From: Piromyces finnis finn
Lineage: Eukaryota > Fungi > Neocallimastigomycota
Direction of reading: 5' to 3'
Length of the DNA: 64,000 nucleotides
NCBI GenBank assembly: GCA_002104945.1
Contig: MCFH01000071.1
Coordinates: 171,082 to 235,081, forward strand
Position numbers and translations under genes: made by a program. Numbering within the stretch: position 1 is the first letter of the stretch; each line of letters begins with the position of its first letter. Below are positions 11,802 to 44,268 of this stretch, in pieces. The notes under the pieces were generated by a model, which did no database searches, was not told the DNA's origin, and saw nothing but the letters and a program-made list of their open reading frames with translations.

Positions 11802-11872
11802 TAAGCAATAAATAAAACATTAAAAACAACAACAATGGCAGTAAGCAATAAATAAAACATTAAAAACAACAA
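11802..11872 (+). repeat. 31-bp direct repeat x2 (taagcaataaataaaacattaaaaacaacaa) with 9-bp spacer
   Basis: Copies at 11802-11832 and 11842-11872. Confidence 0.8.
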
Positions 11873-15956: not shown

Positions 15957-18027
15957 TTATATATTGTATAAAAAGACAATAGTCACTATAGCTATTATTA
16001 TTTCGGCAATTTTACTGATAGAATTTATTACAGAAGAGCTTTCTTCTCTTTTTTCGTGTTTTGAATGATCAGAAAAACCGATGTTTTCTTCATCTTCATC
16101 TCTTTTTTCTATTTTTCTTAAATCAAAGTTGGTAACATTAGCATTTGGTTTTACCAAATCTTCATTGAAACATTCTTCGCCTGACCAAACGCCACGTTTT
16201 CTTAAATAACTATTATAATTCCAACCGATTGAATTTTTCATGTTACTTGGAGTAAAAATCCAAGAAGGATATTCTACTTCTTTAACCAATGGTGCTCTTT
16301 GTGCACCACTTGGGAATTTATATGAATTTACCCATGCTGGTTGAACATTATTACCAGTACATCTTGAAGATGGAATAGCATCACAGCACATGAACCATTC
16401 TTCAACAAATTGTCCATCAATCATAGTCCAAATTTTATCTTCATGTCTTCCAAACTTTGATGTTTCTACATCATAGCCATAGGATAAGGCATAGCCTTTA
16501 ATAAATGTATTTGCCTTTTTTTTTTTTTTTTTTAACATTTAATATATATATATATTTTTTTTGAAAAAAGATAAAAATATTATTACGATTATTATTATAT
16601 TGTAATTGTAAATAATTGTGATTATATAATTGTAAATATATTATTGTGTTTATATAATTGTAAATATATTATTGTGTTTATATAATTGTGTTTATATAAT
16701 TGTAAATATATTATTGTGTTTATATATTTGTGAATATATAATTGTGTATTTTTAAAATAAAAAGAGAGATTGAAATTATTTTTTTATATATATATATATA
16801 TAAAGTTAAAAGTTTTGTTTATTTCAATTGATTATTATTAGCATTATAAATAAAATTTATTAATGTTATAATAGATAAAAAAAAAAGTGAATATTATTTA
16901 TTTTTATAAAAATCAGTATTTATTAACAAATTAACAAGTTTTTTTTTAAATACTACTTACAACACCGTGTTGATTAACAATTAAAATTGGGTCATCTTCT
17001 GGTGGAAGATTATATATATAGTTAATAATGTCATCAAAACCACCACCACAACATACTTCTTCATCCGGATCTATCCCTAAGGATAAAGCTAAAGCATAAG
17101 TTTGATGATACTTTTTTTTTTTTTTAAAAAAATACATATTTTGTTAATTGATTTTGTTTATTATTGATTTTTTTAATTTTTTTATATATATATACTAACC
17201 ATACGACGAGAAGTATGGTGTCCACGATGACCATTGTCTTTTTATTTTATTTTTTTTTTTTTAAAAAAATAGTTTAATATTAATATTATTATTCAATATG
17301 AAATCAATGAAAAGTTTAATATTAATATTATTATTCAATATGAAATCAATGAAATGGCAAATATTAATATTATTATTCATTATGAAATCAGTGAAATGGC
17401 AAATATTAATATTATTATTCATTATGAAATCAGTGAAATGGTAAATATACAAACAATACACTATGACTATAGTTTACATAATATATATATATTTACATTT
17501 TTTTCCAATATATTTTTATTTATTAAAAAAAAAAAAAAACTTACTTATGAAATCTCCATTATTTTGTAATATAAAGTGTTGAGTAATGATACGTTTTGGT
17601 TGACGATAAAATGGTGCATTTGGACCAAAATTATTTGTCATACATGCAGCACGAAGCATACCTGTATAACCCTACCATTTCATATATCATATCATTTTAT
17701 AATATTAAAATTTTAAAAAAGTCAATATATATAAATATTTGTTTATTTATTATTTCGTTTGTTTGTTTGTTGTTATTGTCACTCTTTTTTTTTTTTTTTT
17801 CCCAAATAAAATGTATAATTTTTTTTATGAAATCTTACTAAACCATCGGATGGGTGACCGAGACCTTCCATTGAAGACATTGTTGAACCACCTTCAACCT
17901 TTTCATCTTCACTTCCAGTACCAGGTTTTTCAGCGTGAATTTGAACATAAACAACTCTTCCAAAACATTGCTTCTGCCATAATAATAATAACAACGTAAC
18001 AAATAAGATCGAATATTTATTATTCAT
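15957..18027 (-). CDS. Secreted, probably GPI/TM-anchored histidine-phosphatase (phosphoglycerate-mutase-like) family protein; exons 18027-17839, 17671-17545, 17237-17200, 17110-16961, 16514-15957 (353 aa)
   Basis: Signal peptide MNNKYSILFVTLLLLLWQKQCFG, then VYVQIHAEKP, GxxGxxRAxC, SRRMYHQT..LALSLG, CC, PILIVNQH, matching the small fungal RHGEKP...ILIxWxH family pattern. The C-terminus is hydrophobic (IAEIIIAIVTIVFLYNI). Splice phases are consistent. Confidence 0.75.
16623..16748 (+). repeat. Intronic minisatellite, 28-bp unit (tatataattgtaaatatattattgtgtt, made of 14-bp halves), ~4.5 copies
   Basis: Visible tandem array in the last intron of the phosphatase-like gene. Confidence 0.75.
17271..17440 (+). 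repeat. Intronic minisatellite, 42-bp unit x4
   Basis: Unit aatattaatattattattcattatgaaatcagtgaaatggca; reads as 14-codon periodic ORFs in the track. Lies in intron 2 of the phosphatase-like gene. Confidence 0.9.
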
Positions 18028-18099
18028 TCTTTTTTTTTTTTTTTTTAAAATTAACACTTTACAAAAAATATTTTTTTTTAAAATAAACTAAAATTTTTT

Positions 18100-19330
18100 T
18101 TTAAATTATTTGAAAAGATGTCGTCATTTATTTTTATTAGGATTTATTAAAATTTTTTAATAAATGAATAAATAATTAATTAATTAAATAAATATATAAT
18201 AAATTATTAAATAATCCTAATAATTTATTTATTTCATTATTTCATTATTTATTTATTTTTAATAATTATTCACTATTTTTTTTATGAACAAAGTTCATGA
18301 ATTAACTAAATGAATAATTAATCATTAAATAAATTATTTAATTTTATTGAGTGAATGGATAAATAATAAATTAAATAAATTCTTTTTATTCCTCCTTTAA
18401 AAATTTCGGTTGAACCAGTCAAAATACAGGAAAATAATAAAATAAATTAAAAAATGAAAATATTTAGAAAGTCTCCCTTTTTTAAAAAAAATGACAATTT
18501 AAAAAGAAAAATAATATTTAATAATAATAAAAAATAATATTTAATAATAATAATAATAAAATAATTATTAAATATTTAATAATAAAAAAAATAACTATTT
18601 TTATAATAATAATAATAATAATAATAATATTTAATAAAAAAATATTAAATAATAATAATAATAATAATATTACTATTACTATTTAATAACTATTTTTATA
18701 ATAAAAAAATAAAAAATATTTATTATAAAAAATAATTTTTATTTTTTTACCAATTTTTTAAAATATATTATTAATATATAATTAAATTAATTATAATTAA
18801 TTGTTAATATATTAAATTCTATGGTTTACATTTATTTTTTAATTTATTTTTGTTGTTTCAATGTGAAACATTCAATTTTAAATTTTGGCCAAGCAAAATA
18901 AAATGGTGGAGTGGGTAAAACAAACCAGAAATTAAAAAATAAAAAAATATTTTATAATAAATAATAGTAAATAATAAATAAATAATATTAAATAATAGTA
19001 AAAAAAAAATAATAATAATAATAGTAAATAATAAATAATATTGCGTATAATACTAATTAAATAAATATTTTATAATAAATAAATAATATTATTATTTAAT
19101 AATAAATAAATAATAAATAAATAATAAAAATAAATATTTTATAATAAATATAAATAAATAATATTTAATAATAATAATTAAATACTTAATATTATTATTT
19201 AATAATAAAAATTCTTTTTTTTTTTTTTATTATAAAATATTTTTTTATTTTTTTTTAACATTTTAAATAATAAATAAAATAAAATAAAAAAAAGAATTAA
19301 TTTTTTTTTAATATTAAAAAAAATTATATA
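18100..19330. repeat. Near-pure A/T low-complexity (AAT/TAA) tract between divergent genes
   Basis: Long (aat)n and aataaat runs with only small G/C islands near 18405-18430 and 18885-18930. Confidence 0.8.
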
Positions 19331-19636
19331 AATGAAAACATTGTAGAAAAAAAAAAAAGTAAATCATAACAAAGCAAAGCAAAGCAAAGCAAAAAAAACA
19401 AAATATAAAACTATTAGATGAAAAAAAAAGAATAGTTTTTTTTTAAAAAAACAAAACATAAAATTCTAGAGTAATAAAATTACTATCAACAACAACAACA
19501 ACAACAACAACAACAACGACAACAATAACAAATTATAATTAAAATAATCTATTATAGAAACAAACAAACAAACAAACAAGCGAAAAATAAATACAATCAC
19601 CCATTTCTATTTAAAATAATAAAAGTATCATCGATA

Positions 19637-22118
19637 ATGTGGAGGTCACTTTATTTCTTTTTTTTAATAATAAAAAGTGTATTATCGGAATATCAACCTT
19701 TTTCAGTTGCCTTAGGCAAAACCCAACCAACCATAGGAATAAATCCAGATTTATCGGTATTAACCGAAGAGGATTTCCCTTGTTTTTCAATAGCTGATAA
19801 TTCAGCTTGTTCTGGATACGAATTTTACATTCCTCAATCAGGTTATTATGGTTACAGTAAAAAGGATTCTTCTGATTTTACAACTTATGTAAATTTAGAA
19901 GTTGCTAATGATAATGGTTATATAATGGCCACTTGTCCCAATGTTTCATCTCATGATTTCTCAAAAATCGCTTATAGATACAGTGTATATTGTGGTCGAA
20001 TGATGTATTCTCAAGGTACGAATATTAACTTTTTTTTTTTTTTTAAAAAAATATAAATATTCCTCGGTTATTATTATTGCTTATTGCTATTGTTGTTGGA
20101 ATTGTTGTTTGTCACTGTTTATCTATAGATAGTATCTGAAAAAAAAATTTTTTTTTTTTGATATAAACTATAATTTTTATAAAATAAAATAATTATATAA
20201 ATATATAAATAATTATACAATTATATTTATATATCCCTATTACTTTTTTTTTTATTATAAATATAGTCCGTTGGTGTAAACAAAATCCAGATAATTATAG
20301 ACAAAAAGCAAGTTTAATGCTATGTAGAAGAACTTGCATGGAATATGCTCAAAGTATTGTTGATTATGGAGCAAGTGTATGTGGTGATACTACTATTGCT
20401 CAAAAAATTAGTGATAATATTGTAGCAAGATGGTGTAATTTATTTACAGATGACGAAGGATGTATTGAAGGTGTTAAAAATGAAGTTGAAAATTGTGGTA
20501 AGTAGTTAAGGGCCCAGAATTATATTTATATTTTATGAATAAAAAATTGAATGGAACTTGATAAGGGTTATTGGCTATTGGATTACTTTAAAATGAAAAA
20601 GAGAGACGAGACAATGCAAAAAAAAAAATATTGTAAAAAAGAAAAAAGAGACGAGACAATACAAAAGAATTATTGTAAAAAAAAACATAATAATTCAGCT
20701 AAATTAAAAGTTAATAATTTTTAATGATACAATTCAATTTAATGCAACAACAACAAAAAAAAAAAACTGAAGAGTAGCATTCAACTATTATTAATTATTA
20801 ATATCATTTTACATATTTTTTTTTTTTTTTTTTTTTAAAAAAAAGTTTAAAAAATATAAAACATTTATAAAATGTCATTTACAATCATTTGTGTAGTCCT
20901 ACCTTTTTTTTTTTATATAGTTAGAGTGTCAACGCATCAATGCATTGTTTTTTACATTAAAATTTTTCAACAATAAATAGTTAATAATAGTAATAAATAG
21001 CTAATATAAATTTATCTATGAATATATATATGTATATGCAAAATATTTATAGGATATTCTTCAGCTTCTCGTTCTTCTGAAGCAGTCACTTTTAATCCAA
21101 ATAATGCTTGTTGGAAACAACCAGACAAGATTGAAGAAATGAAACAAAAGGCTGACAATGAAGAAAAATCTCAGGTTAAAATGGGTTCCATTAAATGGAA
21201 AATAGCTTATCCTTTAGGAGTTATGCTTATCATAAGTTTAGCTACTTTATTGTTATGGAAAAAACAAAAAGAATTATATAAAAATGGTTATGGTTATATT
21301 GTTGAAAATGAACCAGCTCCGGAAATCATTCCATCTAATGTTAAACCTTCTAGAGATTATATTGATCCAAGTGAATTGGAATTCCCAGAAGCTACTTTAC
21401 CAAGAAAGAGCTCTTTTGCTGTTGGTACTTTAAGTCGATCCAATACTACTAAAACTAATGGTGGTACGGATAATAGTGCTATTTATATGGTAGCTATCTA
21501 TAATTATCATGCTAGAATGGATGATGAATTAGAATTAAAGGCAGGAGATCGTATTCGTGTTGAACATCAATATAATGATGGGTAAATATATATTTTTTTT
21601 TTATTTATGATTTAAAATAGTGAAGGATGAGTCATGTTATAATGAGAAGAAAGGATCCTAATAAGGTCCTAATAATAATGGTCCTCATAATAATGGTCCT
21701 AATCATTAGGATCGTAATAAGGTCCTAATAATAATGGTCCTAAAAATGGCCCTAATCATTAGGATCGTAATAAGGTCCTAATAATAATGGTCCTAAAAAT
21801 GGTCCTAATCATTAGGATATTTATTAAATTAACGATTCTTGTTTATTTATCATTATTATCATAAATTAATCATTTTTTTTGCTTATTATCACATTATTAA
21901 TAACACAATAATTATTATTTTTTAATCATTTTAGTTGGGCTGCTGGTATTAATGAAAGCAACAATAAATTCGGTGCCTTCCCATTAATTTGTTGTTCCGA
22001 TAATATTTCATCTAATCAAAGTCAACTACCTACTCGTAATAGATCAAGGATGAAATCAAGAAGTAGTTCTACTATCAAATCTACTGTAAGATCAACTCCT
22101 TTAAGAAAAAACATATAA
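19637..22118 (+). CDS. Type I membrane protein: signal peptide, Cys-rich ectodomain, TM helix, C-terminal SH3 domain; exons 19637-20015, 20267-20497, 21053-21581, 21935-22118 (440 aa)
   Basis: SH3 consensus VAIYNYHARMDDELELKAGDRIRVEHQYNDGWAAGINESNNKFGAFPLIC is split by the last intron. TM is IAYPLGVMLIISLATLLLW followed by KKQK. Ectodomain contains CFSIADNSAC, YSVYC, LCRRTC, CIEGVKNEVENCG. Confidence 0.85.
21653..21818 (+). repeat. Intronic minisatellite, 53-56-bp unit x3, built of aat/ggtcct modules
   Basis: Unit taataaggtcctaataataatggtcctaaaaatggtcctaatcattaggatcg, in intron 3 of the SH3 gene. Confidence 0.85.
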
Positions 22119-22706
22119 TTTAAGAAAGTAAAAAAAAAAAAAAAAGTAACAACAAAAATAGATTTTTTTAATATAATTATGTAAAAACAAAAACAAAAAA
22201 CAAACAAACAAGAAAAAAAAAAAAAAGTTTTTTAATAACTAAAAAAAAAAAAGAATATAATTGTATGATGTATATAGACATGTCTATATATTGATTGATT
22301 GATGTTTTACTCATTGCACACATCATCTCTCTACCCCTACCTTAACATTTTTGTTTTAAATATACCATATAATAATAAAATAACTTTTTTTTTTTTTTTC
22401 AATATATATATAGATAAATATAGATATATATTTATATAAAGAGGATGAGTTTAAAATGGATTATAAAAATTAATATTATATACATAAATTTTTTTTTTTA
22501 AATGTTATGATCCTTTTCCTTCTCCTCCTCTTCCTTATCAAATTCATTTTTTTTTTTTAAATAAAACTTTTAATATTAATAAAACAAATAAATAAATAAA
22601 TAAAAAAAAGTATAAAATATACAAAATAATCAATTTTTTTTTTTTTTTAAAAGTGTAAAAGAAATGAATTGTTATTTGACGAATAAAGAATTATTTAATA
22701 TTTAGT

Positions 22707-23133
22707 TAATTTTGGTCCAAATGCACCATTTTATCGTCAACCAAAACGTATCCGTATCATTACTCAACACTTTATATTACAAAATAATGGAGATTTCATA
22801 AGTAAACTTTTTTTTTTTTTTAATAAATAAAAAATATATTGGAAAAAAATGTAAATATATATATATTATGTAAACTATAGTCATAGTGTATTGTTTGTAT
22901 ATTTACCATTTCACTGATTTCATAATGAATAATAATATTAATATTTTCCATTTCATTGATTTCATAATGAATAATAATATTAATATTTTCCATTTCATTG
23001 ATTTCATAATGAATAATAATATTAATATTTTCCATTTCATTGATTTCATAATGAATAATAATATTAATTATAAAAAAAAAAATTAAAAGACAATGGTCAT
23101 CGTGGACACCATACTTCTCGCCGTATGGTTAGT

Positions 23134-23174
<41 letters not shown>

Positions 23175-23200
23175 AAAAAATCAATATGTATTTTTTAAAG
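22707..23200 (+). pseudogene. Inverted partial duplicate of the phosphatase-like gene (copy of 17111-17633: 3' part of exon 2, intron 2, exon 3, intron 3)
   Basis: Near-identical reverse complement, e.g. aattttggtccaaatgcaccattttatcgtcaacc and ggtcatcgtggacaccatacttctcg. Carries a 6-bp in-frame duplication (cgtatc), one synonymous change, and its own 42-bp array at ~22906-23070. Confidence 0.92.
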
Positions 23201-23496
23201 ATAAATTTTGTTAAAGGATACGTTAAATTACTCGAGGTTAACAAATAATTAAGAATAATAATTATAAAAATAGTATAATTTAAACTTTAAAAAAAAAGGT
23301 GTGGTGGCAGAGGAAACAAATTCATTTTAATGATATAAATTATTTAATAAATCTTAATCCATATTAATCCTACGTTCTTATTTATATATATTTTTAAAAA
23401 AGTGAATAATATATTTAAATTCATTCAGCCTTTTTTTTTTTTTTTGCTTCATTTCCTTTCTTTTATTTTTTTTTTTTTCCAATTTATATCAACAAA

Positions 23497-24048
23497 ATGA
23501 AAGTAATATGTTTTATGATGAGTTTTTTGGGATTTATCATGATTCCATGGGTAGGTTATGCCAGTCATCTTGAATACTTTTTCCCGGAAGATAAAGAATT
23601 TTTCTGTTTGGATACCTATAGAAAAAATTTTTTTGATAGACATCACAGTGTCAATGTCACTCTCGAAAATTGTTTTTTACTCTATCCGACAAACAAAATT
23701 CAATGTCATCTTAAATCGAATGAAGCTAACGATCATGGTAGTTACAAAACATTAAAAATTGTATCTGAGGAGGATCCCTACAAATGTATTCAACTTTCTA
23801 ATGATACCATGACCTCAGGAGGTAATGTTACCCTTTCTGATGTTAAATTATGGGGGATTATAATGGATACAGTGGATAATCGTTGGTTTTATCAAAGAAG
23901 AATTCAACAAGTTTACGATTTTAGTCGAAATTCCTTAGGCGGAAATTATAATAAAAAAAGATTTGAATTTACTTTTATGGTCGGGGAAAAACAACTTTGT
24001 CAATATTCTATTGAATATGATAAAAAAAGTATTGAATTTTACAATTAA
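23497..24048 (+). CDS. Intronless small secreted orphan protein (183 aa)
   Basis: High-complexity ORF with a hydrophobic N-terminus (MKVICFMMSFLGFIMIPWVGYA) and five Cys in the mature part; no family recognised. Confidence 0.7.
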   Translation: MKVICFMMSFLGFIMIPWVGYASHLEYFFPEDKEFFCLDTYRKNFFDRHHSVNVTLENCFLLYPTNKIQCHLKSNEANDHGSYKTLKIVSEEDPYKCIQLSNDTMTSGGNVTLSDVKLWGIIMDTVDNRWFYQRRIQQVYDFSRNSLGGNYNKKRFEFTFMVGEKQLCQYSIEYDKKSIEFYN

Positions 24049-26902
24049 ATCTTTTTAAGATTATTAAAGATTATTAAATTCCCTATTAATAACATTTCCA
24101 AAAAAAAAAAAAAAGTATATATATATATATATATTTTCATCACTACTACAATAGTTGCCTCCTGTAACTATTTTTATAAAAGTGATTAATATTGAATTAA
24201 TATTAACCTTTTATTTCTTTAATACAAAAATACCAATTGATATATATTAAAAGTGTATAGTGATTTTTATTTTCTCTTTTTCTTTTATCTATCTTGAGAA
24301 ATTAGAAATTTAGTTTTTTAATTATTTAATACTATTTATTATACTTTATAGACTCTTTTCTTGAAAAAAAAAAAAAAAACAACAATTGGATCATTAAAAT
24401 AATATATATAAAAAAGATCATGATAGAATATTATTGTTTTTATACCTTTATAAATAAATAAAATATCATAAAAAAGAATTTTATCATTTTTTCCCCCCTT
24501 TCTAATACTAAATTAAACTATCTATTATCTTTTTTTTTAACCCTTTTGTTTAAATAACCGTTTTTAACGAATTTTTTTCTATTTTATTTAAATAATATGT
24601 AAAAAAAAAAAAAAAAAAAAGAAATGAAAGTTTATACAGTTGGGTGGAGGAATATTCGTATATTAATTATAACAACGATAACATCAACATTTCTTTTCCT
24701 TTTTTTATTTTCCTATTTTTTTTTTTTTACTAATATAAAAAATTATAAAGTTTTGAGTTAATAATATTTATATATTTGTATCCATTAACCACACCACCAC
24801 TAACACCATGATTGAATGTATGTATATTCAAATTTTTATAATATAAAAATATGTCTTGATTAAAATAGGTACATTTCATCTAACTTCTAAACCACTACAT
24901 ATAACTATACAACTACACACATCACGTCACTAAAATAGTAAAAAAAAAAAAAAAGGATTTACATCTATAATTAAAAATATAATTTTTTTTTAATAAAAGC
25001 TTATTTTTTTTTATTTTTTAATTAAAAGTAAACAATAAAAGGTGTATGTATATATATATATATATAGAAATTAAAAAAAGCTTATCACTTTTTTTTTTTT
25101 TTTAATATGAAAATAGAGTAAATAAATAATAAAATAATAAATAATAAAAAAAAAAAAACAGTTTTTCACTTAATGTTTCATTATTAATAGGAAAAAGAGT
25201 ATTCACACATATTATTCATTGAATTATAAACTTTTTTTTTTTAATTCTAATATTTCATAATGTATGAATATATTCATATATTTAATTATATTATCTTTTA
25301 ATGATTTATTGTTTTTTTTTTTCTTAATACCACTTTTTTTTTTTTATAAAGTTTATAAAGTTTTTTTTATGTGATTTTTTTTAATAAAAAAAAAAAAAAA
25401 AAACTTTATTTTTTAATATACCCATATTGAAAACTTTATAAAGCTTTTTTCTTTTTATATTAAATCATTCTAGAGGAGGTAGAGAAAAAAGCAAAAACAT
25501 TATCTCAATAAAATTCTTTCAACACCATAAGAATGAATGCCATTAGATGAAGTTTTTTTTTAAATCCTGATTTATTTCTTATTTACTATATCAAGAATAT
25601 TTAATGAGAAAAATGTTTTTTTAGAGAATGAATATTAAAGTTTAAATAATAAGTCATTTAAAATTGTTAATATTTATTGTAATTTTTTTTTTTTTAAAGA
25701 AATAGCATGAATCATTAAAAAATAATAAAAAGAGAAAAAGTGATGAGTTGATGTATACATTAAATTAAAAACTTTAAACATTATAGGTAACCTTTTTTTT
25801 TTTTTTTTTTTTTAAAAAAAGGTCATTTTTAATAAAATTATGATATACCATACTACAAAAAAAAAAAAAAAAAAATACTCTTAAATCATGATGAACTTTA
25901 TAAAGTTAATAAAAAAAAAAAAGTATTATAAATAAATAGTTTAGTTGTTTAAACATACACACACATATATATATTTCTTTTTTTTTTTTTTTAATAAAAA
26001 AAAATATAGTTTTAGGAATACTCATTTATACTCATTCATATGTTGCATATATTATGATGCCATTTGTCTGTCTTGTATACATCTTTTAGAGAACAAACCA
26101 AATTCTTTTTTTAATTAATTTTCATTAATAATATTATTTGAATTTGTATTTTTTCATTTTTATATTTGTATTTTTGTCTATATAATTATTATATAATTAT
26201 TATTGAGATGATACTTTTTTTTTTTTTTTTAATTAATCTTAAAAATAGAGTTATAATTAAAAACAAAAAAGTATTAATTAATAAATGATTTAATTAAAAA
26301 GTAAAAAAAAAAGACTTTTTTTATATTTTTATTATTTTTATTTATTATTAGATTATTATCTTTTTATTAATGACCTTAATGATCTTTTTTTTTTCTTTAT
26401 GATGCATTACATCTTTTTTTTTTTTTTTCTTGTTAGTTTCATACCTTTTTTTTTCTTGTTTGCTGTAACAAAATAAAATGTTAAATTCACATATATTTAT
26501 GATATGTCATATGTTATATCCATTTTCATTGGATGGTTTTTAATCTATTTTATTAATTTCCTAAAAAAAAAAGTAAAAAGACGCTATACAACAAACCTTT
26601 ATTTTTATAAAAATATGAGTTAGAGGGTATGTATGTGTGTGTATTTTTCCCTTCTCATATATGGAATAAATACATATATAAAAAGTCATAAATGCATTGC
26701 ATGATTAGAATTTAATTCAACTATTAAAAGGTTCTTTTTTTTTTTATACTCATCCAAAGCAAAGCTAAAAAACCTTTTTTTTTTCGTTTTCTTTTCTAGA
26801 ACATTGAAAATATGATTCATTCAATCATTCTTTCCTTTGTTCTTATTGCTTTTCCTTATTTGCTTTTTTCTTTCCTTTTCACCTTTCTAGGATTGTAATA
26901 TC

Positions 26903-27066
26903 AATGAATGAAATATTAATAATTTAAATAAATAATTAATTATATTAATGAATGAAATACTAATAATTTAAATAAATAATTAATTATATTAATGAATGAA
27001 ATGCTAATAATTTAAATAAATAATTAATTATATTAATGAATGAAATACTAATAATTTAAATAAATA
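26903..27066 (+). repeat. Intergenic minisatellite, 44-bp unit x3.7
   Basis: Units begin at 26903, 26947, 26991 and 27035 (aatgaatgaaatactaataatttaaataaataattaattatatt). Confidence 0.9.
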
Positions 27067-27957
27067 GTATGATCAAGAATTTTTACCATTCTATTTTTTA
27101 TGTTTGGGTTAAATTTTTACCAAAAAAAGAATTTTTATAGTAAATAAACTTAATATATGAAAAATAAATTATAGAATATTATTTAATATATTATATAATA
27201 TAAATTTTTAATATATTAGTAATTTTTTTAATTTATAATTTTAAATGAAAAAAGATGAAACTAAACAAATTATATTAATTTTTAATTTATTATTAATTTA
27301 TAATATTAAATAAAGTTAAAAATCAATATAAATATAGTTTCTATATAATTATTTTTAAATAGAATAATATATTAATATAAATTCTAAATATATTCAAACT
27401 ATATTACATTACATTTTGTAGACTACTTACATGGAATAACCAATAGTATCAATTTAAAAATACATCATACGCTATAATGTATATTAATGTAGTTGAGTTG
27501 ACATTAAAAGTATGGAGAAAAAATTTATTGTAACGGCCCTTTATTAATATAACACAATATATTAAATTTATATTTATTAATAAATATCTAAATATAATTT
27601 TAATTTATTTACAATAGTATTGTATCATATATTCTATTCATTTGATAACAAAATAAAAAAAACGTTTTTTTATATTAAAATGGAAGATGAGTAACAAACA
27701 TGTCAATAAATTAAATGAATGTGTTATTATAAATTAAATAAAATATTAATTAAATATAAATGGACAGATTGACTATTAAATAAATAAATAAATAAAAAAT
27801 TTATAATTAAAAAATTTTATAATTAATAAAAAAAATTTCATCATTATTAATAATTCTGATAAAAAAAAAAAAGGTAACTTTTAAAAAAAAAATTTTTTTT
27901 TATTATAAAATCTCAATCTAAAATCTAAAAAAAAAAATAAATTAACAAATTAATAAC

Positions 27958-27988
<31 letters not shown>

Positions 27989-29440
27989 AAAGCAAACAAA
28001 CAAACAAAAGGAAACTGTTTATTATGTTATTATAAAGCACAAAAACAACAACAACAACAACGAAAAAAAAAGAAAATTAAAAAAAATTAAAAACTAAAAA
28101 GAAATTATTAAAACATTCTTCTTTGATGATTTAGTTTAAATAAAGAAAAAAGTTTTTTTTTTTTTTTACAATATATTTTATAGTCATATACATGTTCTAA
28201 TTTATTTATCCCTATTTATTTATTAAAAGGAAACAACAACTAAAAAAAAAAGTAAAATATCACCTTTTTATTTTTTAATAATAATATAATAGGAAAAAAA
28301 AAAAAAAACTATGGAAAAAAGAGTAAATAGGATTGATTATAGTTTTTTAGATTAAAAAAAATTTTATAAAAATAGTTTTGAAAAAACTGTCACTTTACAA
28401 TAGTTTTTTTTTATTAAAAAGTATCTGACGTGTTTATCATTTTTTTGTACTCAAAAAAAAAAGTTTTTATTTGAAATGGGACTTTTTTGGTAGTATACAA
28501 AATTAATTTCCCGTATTAAAAAATTTATATCTAAACACAAAATTATTTAGCCATAGCAAGGATTACTAAAAAAATATTATTAAAAATAAAACTAAACTAA
28601 AATGAAATGATATCTTTTTTTTTAAAAAACAAACAAACAAACAAATATATATCAAAAGAAAAAGAAAATTTTTTTATTTAAAAAAATATATAAATTCTAA
28701 TACTATTTTATTTCTATATATAATATAATGAAAATAATAGAAATTAATTTAAAGAAGCTACTTTAAATTAAAGTAAGTTTTTTTATAATTTATTTTAATC
28801 CATAATAAATTATGAAACAACAAACTATAATAACGTATTAACCATTTTATTCTATTATATATTGTAAAAAAAAAAAGAAATGACTCGTTTCAAATTTATA
28901 TAGTAGAACATATGTACAAATAATCAATTAAATTTGAAAAAATCGCATTAAATTCAATCAAAAAAAAAAAACTATTTTTTCAATAATACAATGAATAATG
29001 TTTTTAATACTATTATTTTTTTAGTTTTATAATCAAAATAAGAATAAAAGAAAAAAATAACGTAACCAAAAAAAAAACAATCAAATTAAATTAATCAAAT
29101 AATCAATTCAAAAAAATAAAGTAAAAAAAAAATTACTTTTTTTTTCAAAAAAAGTAACATTTAACACATCACTTAATTTATTTTTTTAAATTTAAAAAAA
29201 AAAAACAATTTAATTTATTTTTTTTTTCTTAAAAATTTTAATTATTTAATAAAACATTCATTTAATAATAGTAATATTCTATGAGTAATAATTACATCGG
29301 TAATTTGGACACAAAACAAACTACACAAAAAAATTTGATAAATAGTTTAAGCTAATAATAATTTATATTCGCATTAATTTATTACCTATAAATTTATAAC
29401 CTAAAAAATTTTTTATTAAATTTTTAAAGTATAAAATAAA

Positions 29441-32400: not shown

Positions 32401-34484
32401 AAGTCAGTAAGAAAAAGGCAGCAAAAGCTGCAGCTAATGCTAAAAAGAAGGAAGTCAATAAAAATAATGAAGAAAGTGGATTACTGGTCACTGGTGAAAT
32501 TACCTATGGTAAAGCAGGTTTACAAGATGAACCTATTCCTACAGATGAAGAAGCTTATAATGCTCTCTTTTCTGAAAATGCTACCTATTGGACACCAGCT
32601 GAAAGAACAGAACGTATTAAGAATTCACCATTCTATGATCATAATCATCATATTGCCAAGTATGGTAAAATAAAGTATAAACCTATGGTGGAATACGATA
32701 CTGATATGAATGAAATTAATGATGAATTAGAAATGTATGAAGCCGCCGCCAATGAAAAAGGTAAGAAGGAAGAGAAGAAGGAAAAGAAGAAAAAGAAGAA
32801 GGCTAATGCCAATGCCAATGCCGCTTCTACTTCTGATGATAAAGATAACACCACTGGTGGTAATGAGCCAAAAAAATCAAAGAAAAAGAAGGCCGTTAAT
32901 AAAGATGAAGAAGAAAATGAAGATTCCGCTGAAGAAAAGATTGCCAAATCAAAGAAAAAAGGAAAAACTTTGAACGTCACATTAACAGATGAAGATGCAA
33001 CTCCTCAGGAGGCAGGAAAGTCAGAAGAGAATAAAAAAGGTAAAAAGAAGGTGAAAGCAGCTGTTAAAGCAAAGGTAGAGGCAAATGAAAGTGCTAGTGA
33101 GTTAGACATACCACCAGTACCAGCAAAGGCAAAGAAATTGAAAAAGGCCAAAAAGGTAGCCAAGAAGTATGACGTTGTTAGTGAAAGTGAAGAAGATTCT
33201 GACTCTATGTCAAATTCATCTCTTCCAGTGCCTACTCCTATCTTAGCACCAACGGCCACCTCAGAAAGTAGTTTAGTCTATTCATCCAATGTATCTACCA
33301 ATGTCAGCAATACACGTTCCACCTCACCACTTTCACAATCCACCACGATTCAATATGCCAGTAATGGCAATGAAGAATTATTGGTTAATAATAATATTTC
33401 TGGTAGAACGGCTTCACTTATCTTTAGTAAGGTATCTCAACCCTCACCACTTTCCTCTGTATCGTATGTCAACTATTATGATGATACAAATACGACAGCT
33501 CAATCCAATGTCACTGCCATGAAGCCTAATCCAACCCCACTTGCCCAATCTCCGGTTATTCCTATTCAAACTCCTAAAACTCCTCTTTTTGGACCATCCT
33601 CCACCACTCCCAAAATGGAAAATCCAGCCATGTTCTCCTTTTCCAATGGTCCCTCTTTAACCATTTCCAATGCCCCGGTAACCACTCCCAATCCAGTTGA
33701 TGTCCAAAGTCAAGGACAAGAAGAAACCATTATTGATTTGTTCAATAGAACGAATAAGAGTTTCCGTCGTCCACGTTCCATTTCATTGAATTCCCATTTC
33801 CAACCTAGTAACGAAAATCGTTCAAGTCTCTCACCACTTCTTATGAGTACTTTTAAGAATTCCTCTACCTTGAAATTGGATCAACCCTTCCTTTCCAATC
33901 ATCAACAATTTAACAATATTAAATTAAATGATAACCCCGCCGCCGCCGCAGCAGCCTCGAATAATTTACCATTTGAATCCTTTGAATCGGAAACTGGACT
34001 TTTCAATTCTAATTCTCATAGTTTAAGTACAAGTTATCTTCCACCAATGCATAATAAGAGTTCAGATTATATTAATAAAGAAACTATTCCAGCTCAAGCC
34101 TCCACCTTCTCCACCGCCACCAACAATCAAAGTGGTTTAAATTTCTTTGATTTTGGTAATGATGGTAGCAGTAGTAGTATGGCCAACCCAATTATTAAAA
34201 AGCCAACTGAAAATGTTATTCAGAGATATAGAAGAGCTAGAACACTTTCTTCACCAGCTGTTCCACCTTCAGTGGATAAAAAGAATCATTTCTATTCACC
34301 ATTTATGACTGGTTTGGATATTAAATATGACTTTTATATTCCAAAATCCAATTCTATTTCACCATTATCATCATCTTTTACCGCCACAGATTCCCATTCC
34401 TATGAAATGAATAGAGAAGAGACGACTCGTCGTCGTAGTCAAAGTATCAATGAAAGAAATAGACCCAATATTAATGATTTTTAA
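29441..34484 (+). CDS. Large single-pass membrane protein with a ~1400-aa low-complexity tail; exons 29441-29761, 30312-34484 (1497 aa)
   Basis: Donor AAG|gtaaaa at 29762 and acceptor ttttaaag|AAT at 30311 join the 143-aa and 1388-aa ORFs in frame. Signal-like N-terminus, TM YLALLYVGGFSLCIICLILF, then Ser-, Asn- and Lys/Glu-rich regions; no known domain recognised. Confidence 0.75.
30113..30286 (+). repeat. Intronic minisatellite, 65-bp unit x2.7
   Basis: Units start at 30113, 30178 and 30243 (ttttaacattcatcttg...gcaatttatatcaataa). Confidence 0.9.
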
Positions 34485-34943
34485 AAAATAAAGGATAAAA
34501 AAAAAAAAAAAAAAAAGGTAAATTGAGAATTGAAAAAAAAAATTTTTTTTTCATATCAATTTTTCTTTTTTTTTTTTTTTTTCATTTATTTAATTTTTAA
34601 TTTTTTTTTTTTTTATTTTACATTCCATGGTAATTTTTTTTTTATTTTAAAAAAACAGTTTAATTTTTTTTTTTTTTTTTATATTTTATAATCCTTTTAT
34701 AAATATTCTTTTTTTTTTTTTTAATTATTTTTTTCTTCATTATTTTTATATTGTTGCTATTTCTTAATAAAGGGTACTTTTGTTTTTTTTTTTTAAGTAA
34801 TGTATATAAAATAATGAAAACATAAAAGTAGGTTGAAAAAAAAAAAAAAAATTTTTTTTTTCCCAATCTATATACAATATACAATACTACACGACTACAA
34901 TATATACATAGCCGCTATTAGCCTACATCATGTATATATCAAA

Positions 34944-34991
<48 letters not shown>

Positions 34992-35318
34992 TTTTTTAAC
35001 ATTAAAACAATATTATTTTTATTGTTTTTATTGTTTTTTTTGTTTTTTTTTAAATTATATTTATTCATTTTATTTTTTTTTTTATTTTTTTATATAAAAT
35101 TTATATATATATATAAAAAAAAAAGAAAAAAAGAAACAGAAAGAAAATAAAAAAATAAAAACTAATCATTCAAAAAAAAAAAAAAAAAAAAAAAACAATT
35201 AAAATTGAATTAGCAAAAAAAAAGAAAAAAAAGAAAAACGAAAAATTCATTTAAATAACAATAGAAAGTTGAAAAAAAAAAAAAAAAAGTATAACCACAA
35301 ATCACTGTAACAACAACC

Positions 35319-35350
<32 letters not shown>

Positions 35351-36031
35351 GAGAAAATGAAAAACCAAAAACCAAAAACCAAAAACCGAAAAAAAAAAAA
35401 AAATTATTTATTTAATTATTATTATTTAATTTTTTATTAATTTTTTTTTTTATTAATACTTTAAATAAATAAATAAAATATATATAAAAAAAAAAAAAAA
35501 AATTCCCCCTTCATTTTATAATATCCCATTTAATTTGTTCCCCTTTTTTTTTTCTTCTTCTTCTTCTTCTTACCTATTTACATGAAATAAATATTTATTA
35601 GTATTTTATTATATTTTAAGGATAGGACAGTTAAGAAAAAACCCATTTATTTTATTGGTTGTTGGTTAGTTGTTGGTTGAATAAATTCTTTTTCTCCTTT
35701 GTAGTTATCAATTGTTTATTCTTATTCTAATTTTAATTATTTCCTTCCTCCTCTTTTTAGGAAATTTTCCTTTTTTTTTTTTTTTTAACATCTTTCTTCC
35801 TAGAAGAATTGAATCAAAGTGAAAGAAAAAAATTTTTTTTTAAATTTCAATAATTCAACCATAGCATAAAAAAAGTAAAAAAAATGAAAAGTTCTTTTAA
35901 TAGCCGTTTTTTTTTTTTTTTTTTTACAGTATAATTTGGAAATTCATACACATAGTAGTATTATTAAAAAAAAAAAAAAATATTTTATTTTATTGTTTTT
36001 TATTTATTATAAATTAAAATTTATTAAATAT

Positions 36032-36062
<31 letters not shown>

Positions 36063-36175
36063 ACCAATAGTAATTAATAAAATGATTTTATAATTAATCT
36101 CTTTTTTTTTTTTCTGGAGGAGATTTTCTTTTTTTTTTTTTCCTTCTTCCTGGTAGGATGGATGTGTCCATTTTT

Positions 36176-38030
36176 TTAAACATTAAAAGTAGTCTTGGTA
36201 CCATCACGTTTAAGTAAAGTAACCTTTGGTCCTTTACCAGAACTACTACTATTATTGGAATTATTATTGCTGTTGTTATTACTACCACCTTTCATGGAAG
36301 TCATAGAAGGTTTTCTACTGTAACCTTTATTTTTATTATTACTATTATTACTACCATTCTTTCGGCCAAAATAGTTGCGATTCGTATTGTTTGTATTACC
36401 ATTATCTCCATGACCATCACGGTTATCACGAGATTTTTGATTATTCTTATTATTACGGCTACCACCGTTATTATAACCACCACCATAACCATAGTTATTG
36501 CCAAAACCATATTTATTATTATTACCACTGAAACTACCATTATTTCTACGTTTATCCATTTTACCCTTACTGTTGTTGTTGTTGTTGTTACCACCATTAT
36601 TATTTGTAGTAGTAATAGTGGAAGTATTGTTATTACTGCTACTACCATTATTGTTGGTAGTATTCGTAGAACGTGTATCACTCATAACACTGAGATTTGA
36701 TTCACTATTGGTCTTGGATAAGTTTTCCATGGAATTATTGTTACTACTATGATTACTATTGATCGGGGTAGAGGTATCATTTTTAATTTTTGGACTATTA
36801 GGAATAGAGGATGGATTACTACTGTTATTACTACGATTACCACCATTATTTGTAGAGTTGCTGTTGTTGTTGTTGTTATTGTTGTTACTACTGTTGTTGG
36901 TATTAAGATCAGTTCTAGTCTTCATGACAATACTAATCTTTTTCTTTAAACCAGTACTACTAATACTTCGTCTCAATATCATGGTGGAAGAAGAATTATT
37001 CTTATTATTATTACTACTATTATTTTTATTGTTGTTATTGTTACTGCTGTTATTATCAGAATTATTTTTGGATTTTGATTTGGTGTCTTTAGTGTCTTTT
37101 GATGAAGCTTCCTTCTTTTCTTTTTGAAGTTTTTCTTGAAGTTGCTTTCTTTTCTCTTCTAATTCTTTTTCTTTCCTTTCTCTTTCTTGTAATTTAGCAA
37201 TATTAGCTAATTTGTTTTGTTCTAAACTAGCCTTTAAAGCATTCTTTTGTTGTCGAAGAGCATCTAAAAGTGGAGTTGACTTTGGTTTTTGAGGAGTAAT
37301 TGGATCAATGTAGGATATACCTGTTACCATGGAAGGCTGTATAATAATTTCAGTTTTTTGATTTTCAGTTTCTTCTGCTGCTTTTTCTTCACCTGAATTT
37401 TCTGGTTCTTTTGGTTTTAATGATTCTAAAAAGGCAAGATAATGGTGATCTTTTTTTTTTTTTTAACATTCATCATTATTATACCATTATACCAAATAAA
37501 ATAAACATTTTATGTAAAAATTAAAAAAAAAAAAAAATAGAATTATATGTATTAAATAATAAATTATTTTCATTAGTATCCCTTGCTTTACATAGTATAA
37601 AAAGTCAAACTATCCATAATTTATTAATGAATATAAAATATAAAATAAAAAAATTACCTTTTTCAATGGTATTTTGTTTTAAATCAACATTTTTTCTCTT
37701 TTTTGGAATCATTTGGTATAATGAAAATTCAACTAATGCTTGATATTCATTTCCTTTTTTTTTTTTTTTTTTGAATTAATGAATGAATGAATAAAAGAAT
37801 GAATGTAATGATAAATATTAAAAAAATAAATACATATATGGTATGTATATGGTATAGGGTATAGTTATATATGATGTGTTCATGAATATAAATAAGATTG
37901 AAATAGTAAAACAAAGTAATAAGTATAAACATAAATAATATAGGTTTTAATAATTTTTTTATAATTAGTTAAAATTATTGATAGAAATTAATTTTGAAAT
38001 TATTTATTTATTTTTATTTATACATATTAT

Positions 38031-38075
<45 letters not shown>

Positions 38076-38212
38076 GATTTCCTTACCTTTTGAATCAATA
38101 AACATATGGCCATCATATTCTTTAAAAAATTCAATCAAGGTTTCAATATTTTTAAAATTTAAATAAGCTCTTGAAAAGACATTTTCCTTGGCTTTACTGT
38201 TTTCCGTTTATT

Positions 38213-38247
<35 letters not shown>

Positions 38248-38777
38248 GTTGTTGTTATTTTTGTTATTATTAATTTGTTGTTGGTTTAATTGATATTTTT
38301 TTTTCAAATTTTGGAAATTGAAAAATGTAAATGTCATATCCATTGATAACAATGATTTTATTGAATATTATAAATAAAAATAAATTATTGTTAATTTTTT
38401 TATTATTATAATAATAATAATAATCACGTTGGAGGAAAAAATATATATATATAAACAATCAATTTATAATCGTAGTAATATATATATTATAAATTATTTT
38501 TAATTTTTATAATTTTTATCAATTAAATTCTACTATTTCTAAATAAATAAATAATGACGATAGCTATAAAGTTTTCTTTTGATTTAGTTTACCTTTTGCT
38601 TAATTTTCCTGGGTAATAGGATTTCCAGGTGATATTTTCTAACCATTCATTAATACTGTCATAAAAAACTTCTTCTGGAAGGTTTGGTGGAAGACGACGA
38701 ACAATAACTTTTGTTCTAGCTTTTAATTTCTTTTGATTTACTTGTTTTCTGGTATTCTTTTTAAGTTGTTTATTCAT
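36176..38777 (-). CDS. UPF3: Nonsense-mediated decay factor UPF3 (Smg4/UPF3 RRM-like domain); exons 38777-38593, 38196-38087, 37753-37658, 37449-36176 (554 aa)
   Basis: Spliced N-terminus KVIVRRLPPNLPEEVF...WKSYYPGK...FSRAYLNF...YDGHMFIDSKGNEYQALVEFSLYQMIP...NTIEKDHHYLAFLESL...STPLLDAL matches the UPF3 family; intron phases are consistent. Confidence 0.92.
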
Positions 38778-40265
38778 TTTTCATTTAAAAATTAAAAAAA
38801 AAAAAAAAGTTATACTATTTCAAAAAAATTATAAATTTTAAGTGAGTCTTTTTCTTTTTAAATTAAATATAAAAAAAGGAAAAATTAAAAAAAAAAAAAA
38901 AAAAAAAAAACGGATATACTGTGGGAATTAAGAATAATTTTATAAAGTATTCCTATAAATTAATGAAAAATAATAATAAAAAAAGGTATCAAACTTTGTC
39001 AAGTAAATAATATTGTCTTTGTCTTTTTATTATTATTATTATTTTATGTGTGTTTTATGCGTATTTTATAATAGATTTTGATGAATTGAACAATGTTTAA
39101 AATGTCAAAAAAAAAATAAAATAAAAAAATTAAAAAATAAAATTATTTATAATAAATTAATTTTTTATTAATTAAATTATTTCACCAAAAAAAAAAAAAA
39201 AAGAAAACTTTATGCTATAAAATACGAAAAGTTTTTATTTTTTTTGAATGAAAAAAAAAAAAGAAAAAGAAAAGAAAAACTATTGAAATGACAATGATAA
39301 TGTTTGTTTGCTTTTACTTTTTTTTTTTTTTTGTATTCTATTTTATTTTGATTCTATATATTTTTTTTATTGACCTCTTTTTTTTGGATTCCATATAACT
39401 TTATAAAAAATTACTACTACGAAAAACTACAGGTACAGTAAGACATCTATAAAATATTTCTTATTATTATTATTATTATTATTATTATACTCAATAACAT
39501 TGATTATAAAAATAAAACACATACATATATATATATATATATACATACACACCTTAAAAATAAAAAAAAAGAAAAAGAAAAAGAAACATGTAATAACTAG
39601 TTTCTTTTATAAAAAATAGAAAAAGTTACTATAAAATGGAACAACCACAACAACAAAAAAACTGCCACCAAACTTTGGCCAAACAAAAAATGTATACATT
39701 CATTTTGATTTTTTATTATTATTGGTCGAATTAGATCCAATCAATAATACTATTGTACATTACTTCAATTACATTTATTATTGAATTAAAATTTATTTAA
39801 TTAATTATTTTTTCATTCATTAACTTATGTATTTATTTACTTATGTATTCATTTATTTTTATTAATTATTTATTTATTTATTCGTTTATATTTATTATTT
39901 AAATTTATTTAATTATTTATTTATACATTCATTCATTTATATCCATTAATCTTTTTTATTTTTATATTAAAAAAAAACATTTAATTATAAAATTTTTTTA
40001 AAAAAAAAAAAAAAAACTTTATTTTTTTATAATAATAAAAGGGCCTTGAATAAAGAAATTAATCTGAAATTTCTTTTTTTTTTTAAAAAAAAATTTATTA
40101 CCAAATTGAACATTTCAAATTAATTTTGATAAGAGACTCTTCATCTTTAATAGAGTTTATATTTTAATTTTTTTTTTTTTTTTTTTTTATAGAATTTCAA
40201 ATAAAAGATTTTTCTTATATCCTTCCTATACCATTCCTATTTACATAAAACTTTATATATAAAAA
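38778..40265. promoter_or_regulatory. Putative bidirectional promoter region between UPF3 and RRP6
   Basis: Inferred from the head-to-head start codons 1.49 kb apart; no specific motif can be supported in this low-complexity sequence. Confidence 0.5.
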
Positions 40266-43200
40266 ATGGATTCAAAAAATTCAACATCCTCAGGAATTTC
40301 CAATGAAACCAATAATAAACTTTTCAAGGCTGTCGTAGGTACAGCCAAAGCAACTCAGTTTTTGATTCCAACCGAATATTCATTCTTTAAATCATCAGAC
40401 AAAAATTTTAGTAAATCTATAAAAAGAACCAATAAAACTTTACTTGATATTTGTAATAAATGTATCAATTATGTTAATAATACCAATGGAAAAGCTTTCA
40501 CAGATATAAACGATTTTTCTGATAACTACAAGGATATCGTTGAAGTTATGGATAATTTATTAGAAAAAGCTGTAAGTGTTCTTGCTTGTTTGAATCTTTA
40601 AATAGTATTGAAAATATATATATATATATTTGTACATTTCGATTTGAAATTATATTTCACCAATTTTAAACTGAAATTGAAATTGGGGAAATCTCTTGTT
40701 ACAACAAGTATAGAAATGAAAATAGAATATGCAATATACATTATACAATACCCATATATTATGTTTTGATAGATATTGCCATCACTCTTCATAAATCCAT
40801 AAAATTTTATATTTCAAATTAAATCATTAATTTTTTTTCTCTATTTTTATATAAATAAATGTATTTTATATATATAATACACCCATACCACTATTAAATC
40901 TATAAAATAAAAGGATGTTTGTATTGATGAAATTACAGGAAAAAGAAAGGCATACAATACTGCTGGAATCATAAAAACTAATCCACTTGTTGCTCAAATG
41001 AACGTAGATAATGACAATTCAAAAACCAGTAATTACAAATTACTTCATGCTCAAAACATTCTAAGACCACAACTTAAATTTGAAGATAAAATAGATAATT
41101 CTAATAATCCAGCTCCTTTAAAAATAAAAGTTAAACCAAATGCTAAAGTTCCACTTAATGTTATTGACGATGTTGATGAAAGTGGAAATCAAACTAATAT
41201 GGAAAAGTAAGTATTTTTTTTTTTTTATCATTATTTCTAGTATGATTTGGGGGAGGGAATTTCTAGATATATACCTATTATATTTATATACTATTTCTTT
41301 TTTTTTTTTTTTTTAATATGAAAAACATATATTTACTAATATTAAAATATATATATATATATTTATTATAATTATAACTATTATTGTTGTTGTCATTATA
41401 ATAATGATATGATAATTCATTATAATTTCAATTTCATTTACTCATCCTAAATTTTAAATTTTTCTATCAACATTTATTGTTAATTACAAAATATAAAGTT
41501 ATCATCCATACCAATATGAAATTGAACATATTGAATATCCAGATAGAATGTTCAACATTAATGAACCTATTATGCCAAAAGATTATGATCAAACTCCATT
41601 TACTTTTGTTGATACCAAAGAAGAATTTATGAAAATGATTGAAAAGTTAAATGTAGCCACTGAAATCGCTGTAGATTTAGAAGTATGTTCAAAAAATAAA
41701 CAACTCTATATAAAAAAACGGAATAATAAATCATCCATATTAAAAATCCGAATTTCTAATAAAACTTACAAATAATACAATAATATAATTCAAAAATATT
41801 AATTATTTTCTTAATATTACTATTTATATTTATTTACGCTTTTCTTTTCCCTTTAATATTTGCATATATTTGACATGATCAAACTAAATAGCATCATGAC
41901 TATCGTTCCTTCCAAGGTTTTACTTGTTTAATTCAAATTTCAACACGTACAGAAGATTGGGTAGTAGATGCTTTAGCCTTAAGAAGTCATATTTATCATT
42001 TGAACGAAAGTTTTACCAATCCAAACATTGTCAAGGTAAGAAAAAAAAAAAAAAAAAAAAGCATATCTAGAGAATAAAAGATCTACATACTTTATATTAA
42101 ATAAGAATAAGGATGATGATTTCTTTAATAATAATATTTTTTTTTTTTTTAAAAAAAAAAAAAAGGTTTTCCATGGTGCTGAATCTGATATTGTTTGGCT
42201 TCAATGTGATTTCGGTGTTTATGTTGTTAATCTTTTCGATACTTATCACGCCTCACATTTATTAAACTATTCTCAGCACAGTCTTGCTTATCTCTTAAAA
42301 TATTTAGTCAACTTTGATGCCGATAAGAAATACCAATTAGCAGATTGGAGAATAAGGTAATAAAAAAATTGTATAGATGTAAATTATAAATTATGTTATA
42401 TATCATACCTATCATATAGAATACACTTATTATTTACACAGTTACATAATTGTTTATTAATAAATTTTTATTTTTGATAATTTTATTTTTATTATATTAT
42501 ATATATATATATATATATATTTACTTTTCAATATTAAAAATATTGTTATTATTATTGTTATGTGACTGTTTCATTTCCTTTTTTTATGATAAATAACATT
42601 TAGACCATTACCAAAAGAAATGTTAAAATATGCTCGTGATGATACACATTATTTATTATATATTTATGATCGTATGAAGAATGATCTTATTGCTAATGGC
42701 GATCCAACCACTCATAATTTAATGAAAGTCACTTTAGAAAGATCCGAACGTACTTCTCTTAATGTTTATCACAAGGACATCTACAGTGAAGATGGTACTG
42801 GTAGATATGGTTGGCGTAGTATTATTCATCGTGATCCTAATGCAATTAATGGTGAACAATTTGCCATTCTTAAAGCCGTTCATAAATGGAGAGATCAAAC
42901 TGCACGTGAAGAAGATGAAAGTCCACGTTACGTTATGCCAAATCATATTTTAAGAAGAATTGCTGAAGTCATGCCAACAGATCCTCAAAGTATTCATGGT
43001 TGTTGTAATCCAATTCCACCTTTAGTTAGAATGTATTCCATGGATATTGCTCGTATCATTGAAAAAACACGTACTGAATTCCTCAAGCATAAAAAAGAAC
43101 ATGAGAAAAGATTTGCTGAAACTGCCAAGGTTTTAAAGGCTATGAAGGAAAGAGAAGAACGCGGACCAGTTCATCAATTCTTTGATAATGAAGAAGATGG

Positions 43201-44106: not shown

Positions 44107-44147
<41 letters not shown>

Positions 44148-44268
44148 TACTAATTCAATTATATATATATATCAAAATATTAAATAGTTTGCTGAAAAGA
44201 TTCAAAAGAATGCTGTTAATCCACGTTCCGGTAACCGTACCTACACCTTTAAGAATACAAAGAAATAG
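40266..44268 (+). CDS. RRP6: Exosome 3'-5' exoribonuclease RRP6/EXOSC10 (PMC2NT, DEDDy, HRDC); exons 40266-40571, 40914-41206, 41499-41682, 41892-42035, 42166-42356, 42604-43975, 44188-44268 (856 aa)
   Basis: Motifs [97 protein letters not shown], and C-terminal SGNRTYTF. Confidence 0.97.

Follow-up and report, generated by a model that had tools for sequence, protein, structure and literature searches.

The window analysed here is a stretch of 64 kilobases (kb) from the anaerobic gut fungus Piromyces finnis (contig MCFH01000071.1 of assembly GCA_002104945.1), with a G+C content of 22%. Three of its genes, UPF3 and an unnamed gene on the minus strand and RRP6 on the plus strand, contain between them five introns in which an unbroken run of A leads straight into the terminal AG; we refer to each intron by the position of its acceptor G. 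A sequence-only reading of the window had reported 14 to 18 consecutive A at these acceptors, and the runs are found where it placed them: A18 at 16515, A14 at 17111, A14 at 37450, A18 at 37754 and A14 at 42165. Its description of two of the acceptors as a T-tract followed by A14 and G is equally accurate, the tract being T7 at 17111 and T14 at 42165. In what follows, the exon junctions of the three genes are compared with homologous proteins and transcripts, the ends of the introns with those of their relatives and of other introns in the window, and the explanations that can be offered for the A-runs are weighed against these data.

The UPF3 model (36176-38777, minus strand) encodes 554 amino acids (aa), of which the C-terminal 300 form a low-complexity region rich in N, S and G. 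The first of its A-run introns in the direction of transcription, 37754..38086 (333 nucleotides, nt), starts with GTAAGG, carries an A41 run 14 nt downstream of the 5' splice site and closes with a 30-mer of 77% pyrimidine, A18 (37755-37772) and G 37754. The second, 37450..37657 (208 nt), ends in A14 (37451-37464) and G 37450. The three upstream exons match the Pfam family Smg4_UPF3 at profile positions 2-45, 49-83 and 85-115, the latter two being the exons that flank 37754..38086. In addition, contigs L017 and L018, which are spliced messenger RNAs (mRNAs) of relatives with 82-93% identity, carry four UPF3 exons in uninterrupted succession, with just the single split codon between neighbours that the intron phases predict. 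The exons on either side of the first UPF3 intron (38197..38592, minus strand), in which an A27 run ends 20 nt before the acceptor CAG, are contiguous in the same two mRNAs. Proteins of 233-740 aa in a large collection were searched for the beginning of the last UPF3 exon (region 1-120) and none contained it, a result that is uninformative on expression and is explained by the length filter and possibly by a broken public model. Full-length UPF3 may be missing from the public annotation.

The RRP6 gene holds the fifth of these introns, 42036..42165 (130 nt, plus strand), which has a run at either end: GTAAG followed by A20 (42041-42060) at the donor, and T14 (42137-42150), A14 (42151-42164) and G 42165 at the acceptor. 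Human EXOSC10 in the PDB is matched over residues 316-363 by the exon ending at 42035 and, on the same chain, over residues 364-426 by the exon starting at 42166; the two exons also cover positions 30-79 and 80-142 of the Pfam 3'-5' exonuclease profile. A relative's spliced mRNA (L019) joins at the ends of 42036..42165 and skips the other predicted RRP6 introns too. Among these is the last one, 43976..44187 (plus strand), where a run lies at the donor end, the GT being followed directly by A17 (43978-43994), and across which L019 aligns up to 43975 and resumes at 44186. Contig L019 documents in vivo splicing, in a close relative, at orthologous acceptors that are A-rich and have no tract. In a relative's metatranscriptome contig (L010:1-135) the intron before the long RRP6 exon is retained, the other introns having been removed.

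The third gene (15957-18027, minus strand) contributes two A-run introns: 16515..16960, a 446-nt GT-AG intron that starts with GTAAGT and ends with A18 (16516-16533) and G 16515, and 17111..17199 (89 nt), which starts with GTTAGT and ends with T7, A14 (17112-17125) and G 17111. A further intron, 17238..17544 (307 nt, minus strand), has an interrupted A-run at its 3' end (T7 A13 T A4 T A5 G), and its flanking exons are contiguous in P0003, a full-length open reading frame (ORF) from a relative's transcript. The protein junction at the 16515 intron, NQHGV-(C/A)(D/N) (NQHGV-ANTF in the window), is gapless in the transcript ORFs P0002, P0003 and P0004, and SRRM-YHQTY, at the 17111 intron, is gapless in P0003 and P0004. 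The sequence-only reading had called this gene a phosphatase, a label we drop: Pfam and the PDB offer no match either to the exons in the window or to the full-length P0003. The gene has just 7 relatives in a set of 1.84 billion representative proteins, all from contigs that resemble those of anaerobic fungi. Its product has an N-terminal signal-like segment and a C-terminal hydrophobic segment, and is predicted to be a secreted or anchored protein specific to anaerobic fungi. One relative's contig (L003:430-595) retains the first intron of this gene with the others removed; together with the RRP6 case in L010, this makes intron retention seem common in the relatives' metatranscriptome data.

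GenBank presents the third gene differently. It gives a 172-aa product over 18027-16946 and a separate gene for a 155-aa product (P0001), which begins at an internal methionine in the last exon. The length of 172 aa fits only if acceptors 17672, 17238 and 17111 are used and donor 16960 is read through to an intronic stop; the GenBank annotation therefore uses the 17111 A-run acceptor and misses the one at 16515. A cluster look-up of P0001 returned the GenBank protein alone. Judged by the homologues, this looks like one gene for a protein of about 337 aa that GenBank has split, a gene-model error at the A18G acceptor.

Judged by homology to PDB chains, Pfam profiles and orthologous mRNAs or ORFs, the junctions are codon-exact at all five introns. 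This bears on the suspicion that these junctions are unused or poorly used in P. finnis, owing to retention or to other acceptors, in which case the A-runs would say nothing about splicing. Such a view could point to the GenBank model, which leaves the 16515 intron unspliced, ending one gene within it and starting a second, 155-aa gene, to the lack of any full-length UPF3 model among the proteins of 233-740 aa, and to the relatives' contigs L003 and L010, which retain other introns. Retention would, however, truncate conserved domains at junctions that agree to the codon with their homologues, and even the annotated 172-aa product requires the 17111 acceptor. There is also indirect evidence from four public sequencing runs, which hold 29-37% of the 31-mers sampled from 37000-42900; 33% of the 31-mers of this region lie wholly in modelled coding exons (38% of its bases are exonic), and spliced transcripts should yield just such a match between word share and exonic share. 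We consider poor use of these junctions very unlikely.

We examined the features that the five introns have in common. All of them have GT at the 5' end within a GTAAGT-like donor (GTAAGT for 16515, GTTAGT for 17111, GTAATT for 37450, GTAAGG for 37754 and GTAAGA for 42165) and, at the 3' end, an AG that restores the frame of the conserved protein. This acceptor is in each case the first AG after an AG-free zone, which extends over 436 nt in the 16515 intron, 82 nt in 17111, 130 nt in 37450, 326 nt in 37754 and 52 nt in 42165. Use of the first AG is only weakly informative, because G makes up just 6% of intron bases. Branch-like UUAAY motifs are found 22-37 nt upstream of the AG in three of the introns (UUAAC at 33 nt for 17111, UUAAU at 22 nt for 37754 and UUAAU at 37 nt for 42165). 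The nearest motif of this type lies 71 nt from the AG in 37450 and more than 290 nt from it in 16515; at 86% A+T, so degenerate a motif is not diagnostic. The UACUAAC that is near-invariant in Saccharomyces cerevisiae was not seen in any of the five. The branch-motif scan covered 5-mers only, and by eye we noted a UACUAAU in the 37450 intron, upstream of a T15; its CUAAU would put a candidate branch A some 123 nt before the AG. The other introns offer only the UUAAY and CUAAY 5-mers.

The region next to the acceptor is where these introns depart from the textbook. The last 14-18 nt up to the AG are all A, and the 30 nt upstream of the runs range from 40 to 77% pyrimidine. None of the five has a metazoan-type polypyrimidine tract between branch site and AG, a feature known to be dispensable in fungi (PMC3033335, PMC7384967); in their donors, their terminal AG and the restored reading frame they fit the definition of U2-type introns. 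The claim that three of them (16515, 37450 and 37754) have no U-tract nearby is borne out for the first two, in which the 30 nt before the run contain 40% pyrimidine. In the 37450 intron, indeed, no pyrimidine stretch lies within 70 nt of the acceptor, the T15 ending 73 nt before the splice site. It fails for 37754, where the 30-mer directly before A18 is as rich in pyrimidine (77%) as that of the 42165 intron; T7 occupies the corresponding place at 17111.

Two special structures were considered and rejected. A U12-type intron would be recognized by a 5' /[AG]TATCCTT and by the branch site TCCTTAAC near the 3' end, neither of which occurs in any of the five. A hairpin between a U-run and an A-run might bring the branch point close to the AG, and minimum-energy folding predicts such pairing in two introns, between U15 and A14 for 37450 and between A20 and U14 for that of RRP6; this explanation was set aside because the folds are no stabler than those of shuffled sequence (z = -0.05, -1.2 and -2.0).

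We also compared the introns with their orthologues. In genomic metagenome contigs of close relatives, the introns examined in RRP6 and the third gene all sit where they do in the window; the ends of the introns differ. The orthologue of the T14A14G intron of RRP6 ends in a CT-rich segment with (TA)n and AG in L011 and L012, where the flanking exons are 92-98% identical, and in (AAT)n AAAAG in another relative (L013 and L014). RRP6 intron 2 has a mixed A/T end in the window and T15AG in L013, and in intron 3 a run of A17-A20 lies near the donor in both relatives and not in the window. The orthologous introns of the third gene end in TACTAG, AAATAG or A6G. Thus, the A-runs are not conserved at any orthologous acceptor examined. 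The window itself offers a clock for the instability of the runs, an inverted partial duplicate of 17120-17625 (minus strand) at 22700..23220 (plus strand), about 98% identical and comprising two exons and an intron. Where one copy has A7TTA7, the copy at 22700-23220 has A35, and in the latter the T7A13 tract is shortened or lost; the homology between the two stops within the T7/A14 tract of the 17111 acceptor.

The same contigs speak to the worry that the homopolymers are long-read errors and that the true tracts are mixed or U-rich. Homopolymer lengths are indeed error-prone in long-read assemblies; an error of this kind might make a run a few bases too long or too short, though it could not create an A18, and the window holds 255 A or T runs of at least 10 nt, very different in length and reaching 53 nt. 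Moreover, the relatives' contigs, which were assembled independently from short reads (k141, L006-L016), carry 0.8-2.4 runs of at least 10 nt per kb, among them the T15AG acceptor, and so argue against a long-read artefact, an explanation that we find hardly credible.

The G that follows the A-runs proved to be of general occurrence. Over the whole window and both strands, reading each run of at least 10 nt in its A orientation, the next base is G in 116 of 255 cases (45%) and the preceding base is G in only 24%; after shorter runs of 8-9 nt the G share is about 25%. The share is similar in intergenic DNA (91/205, 44%), on the antisense strand of genes (13/26, 50%) and on their sense strand (12/24, 50%). 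Since it is alike in all three, A(n)G is a habit of this genome and not a mark of acceptors. The excess of G after long A-runs could be a mutational signature or stem from a dispersed element.

To place the five introns among the others of the window, we used gene models from our own small hidden Markov model (HMM) gene finder, which has no term for acceptor composition. A first HMM pass split genes and missed known introns, and a retuned pass recovered all five A-run acceptors; 11 predictions were dropped as dubious, being over about 900 nt long, past stop codons or in a pseudogene copy, and 33 plausible introns kept. In these, A accounts for 42.8% of the bases, T for 42.7%, C for 8.2% and G for 6.3%, and their runs of at least 10 nt are divided almost evenly into 22 of A and 23 of T, about one per 185 nt. 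Positions -3 to -14 contain 54-58% A and 36-40% T, and at positions -15 to -30 T is slightly ahead, at 49% to 39% for A. The acceptor trinucleotide is TAG in 16, AAG in 13 and CAG in 4. Intron ends in this set are thus generally without pyrimidine bias next to the AG. Runs also mark other termini: there are donors of the forms GTAAGT(n), GT+A10, GT+A17 and GTAAG+A20, and the acceptors include T12AG, T13CAAG and T10AAAG. The phenomenon is therefore specific neither to A nor to acceptors.

These observations do not support the proposal of the sequence-only reading that the A-run acceptors amount to an undescribed splicing grammar: the runs are unconserved, A and T runs are equally frequent, and A(n)G occurs genome-wide. 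Nor does anything point to the A-binding factor it had put forward, or to the A-run as a signal of any kind, run lengths differing even between duplicates that are about 98% identical. Its other suggestion, recognition by the branch point alone or scanning for the AG, is the best-supported reading, and falls short only as a novelty, such splicing being established in fungi (PMC3033335, PMC7384967, PMC5411709).

We conclude that these are probably ordinary major-type GT-AG introns in which the segment between branch point and AG happens to hold a mutationally unstable poly(A) run. Introns in this lineage are about 86% A+T, with as much A as T, and G is rare enough for AG-free zones to extend over 50-400 nt. 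The segment between branch point and AG would need only to be free of AG. A degenerate UUAAY or CUAAY, the putative branch site, would be recognized and the first AG downstream taken as the acceptor. The A-run would then be a harmless AG-free spacer, likely to fold only where a U-run is nearby, that slippage could lengthen and shorten freely, with growth stopping at the constrained G of the AG. The pyrimidine stretches at 17111, 37754 and 42165 sit just upstream, and the A-run has the appearance of having been inserted between tract and AG. Given that pyrimidines are not favoured beside the AG, splice-site choice most likely proceeds as it does in the tract-poor introns of other fungi.

Such introns are well documented. 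Most fungi have weak pyrimidine tracts, for which the branch site compensates (PMC3033335); budding-yeast introns are generally without a tract, and Mud2 contacts the intron over its full length (PMC7384967); and in Schizosaccharomyces pombe tract-less introns exist that are less efficiently spliced (PMC5411709). Like the tract-poor introns of S. cerevisiae and many of those of S. pombe, the five introns are GT-AG introns with no U-rich tract between branch point and AG. They differ from the S. cerevisiae type in lacking a strong UACUAAC-type consensus, having only the degenerate UUAAY/CUAAY, and from tract-poor fungal introns at large in that the spacer is an uninterrupted homopolymer of A14-A18, an extreme that we have not found described in the literature searched. 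On A-run acceptors in anaerobic fungi our literature search yielded no report, only general papers on weak fungal tracts. The introns are, in short, of the tract-independent fungal type at a compositional extreme.

Work in mammals and yeast has shown that, in the second step of splicing, the AG is found by scanning from the branch point or the pyrimidine tract. The use of the first AG in all five introns and the pyrimidine-rich stretch upstream of the A-run in three are shared with that process. On the other hand, if UACUAAU is the branch site of the 37450 intron, the distance of some 123 nt to the AG is long for simple scanning. As for the runs themselves, the extremely AT-rich genomes of Dictyostelium and Plasmodium have non-coding DNA saturated with fast-varying A and T homopolymers. 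The runs of the window differ in that they abut splice-site dinucleotides and cluster at intron ends, a pattern that we have not found reported for anaerobic fungi.

It is this clustering that weighs against our interpretation of the A-runs as neutral spacers. If the 45 runs within introns were placed uniformly, 2.7 should start no more than 14 nt from the 5' splice site, 4.2 should end no more than 20 nt from the 3' splice site and 0.42 should touch the AG; the actual numbers are 11, 14 and 6, and at most 1 in 20,000 random placements reached any of them. A purely neutral process that places runs uniformly does not predict runs at intron ends, and their excess there is the one observation that our account does not fully explain. 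An A-run of at least 10 nt stands at the AG of 5 of the 33 curated acceptors (15%) and of 4.7% of intergenic AGs (p = 0.018); the comparison with intergenic AAAG-type sites (14.8%) gives p = 0.023, and that for runs of at least 14 nt p = 0.0016. A-run acceptors thus exceed both intergenic baselines, AG and AAAG, by a factor of 3-5, an excess that is suggestive and not established, coming as it does from a small sample (n = 33) in a window that was picked after the fact for this very feature. A further weakness on our side is that 28 of the 33 curated introns rest wholly or partly on our own simple gene model.

These figures raise the question of whether dA:dT homopolymers at intron termini are favoured by selection for intron or exon definition, with the A-run replacing the tract. 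The elements of such a signal would be the A(n)G acceptors, the GTAAGT(n) and GTA(n) donors and the U-runs, and it might act in RNA, as an unstructured landing pad or through a Nam8/TIA-1-like or PABP-like binder, or in DNA, by excluding nucleosomes from exon borders. Both the clustering at the two intron ends, well above uniform placement, and the excess of A-run acceptors over the two baselines speak for it, as do the general predominance of A over T in the final 12 nt of introns and the recurrence of runs, of changing type and length, near the ends of the relatives' orthologous introns. Selection for an A-run is hard to reconcile, though, with its lack of conservation at every orthologous acceptor examined, with the symmetry of A(n)G between the sense and antisense strands of genes (12 vs 13) and with the 28 of 33 acceptors that have no such run, and the reservations about sample size and choice of window apply here as well. 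Moreover, terminal runs could perhaps be seeded by bases of the splice-site consensus (T at +6, A at +3/+4 and -2), which would yield abutting runs with no need for selection. We regard selection on the runs as unlikely. The more specific proposition that, in the Neocallimastigomycota, dA:dT tracts set against the splice dinucleotides are a selected, lineage-specific element of intron definition in which poly(A) can replace the tract is, in our estimate, distinctly improbable; such an element would act via a factor binding A/U-runs, enforced single-strandedness or nucleosome exclusion.

If the A-runs are neutral spacers, as we favour, the consequence is a practical one: because the introns of anaerobic fungi show no preference for pyrimidines at the acceptor and bear long A or T runs at both splice sites, gene finders trained on pyrimidine tracts would break genes at introns of this kind, and the 172-aa and 155-aa GenBank products, which divide a protein of the 337-aa type at the A18G intron, would be an example. 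The five acceptors would also represent an extreme natural case of 3' splice sites where a purine homopolymer stands instead of the tract, and would put bounds on what the fungal spliceosome tolerates. Should the clustering at intron ends turn out to be under selection, a lineage-specific aid to intron definition would be indicated.

Long homopolymers elsewhere in the window complete the picture. One more intron, 12534..12710 (minus strand), predicted by our own gene finder only, ends in A20 CTCAG, so that the run stops 5 nt short of the acceptor. Over the window, T(n)A(n) junctions outnumber A(n)T(n) junctions by about two to one (31 vs 13 at n of at least 5, 16 vs 8 at n of at least 7). The runs are densest in three segments of 15-19% G+C without a convincing gene model (8500-12500, 24000-29400 and 52500-58400), in which A53, A50 and A32 are found.

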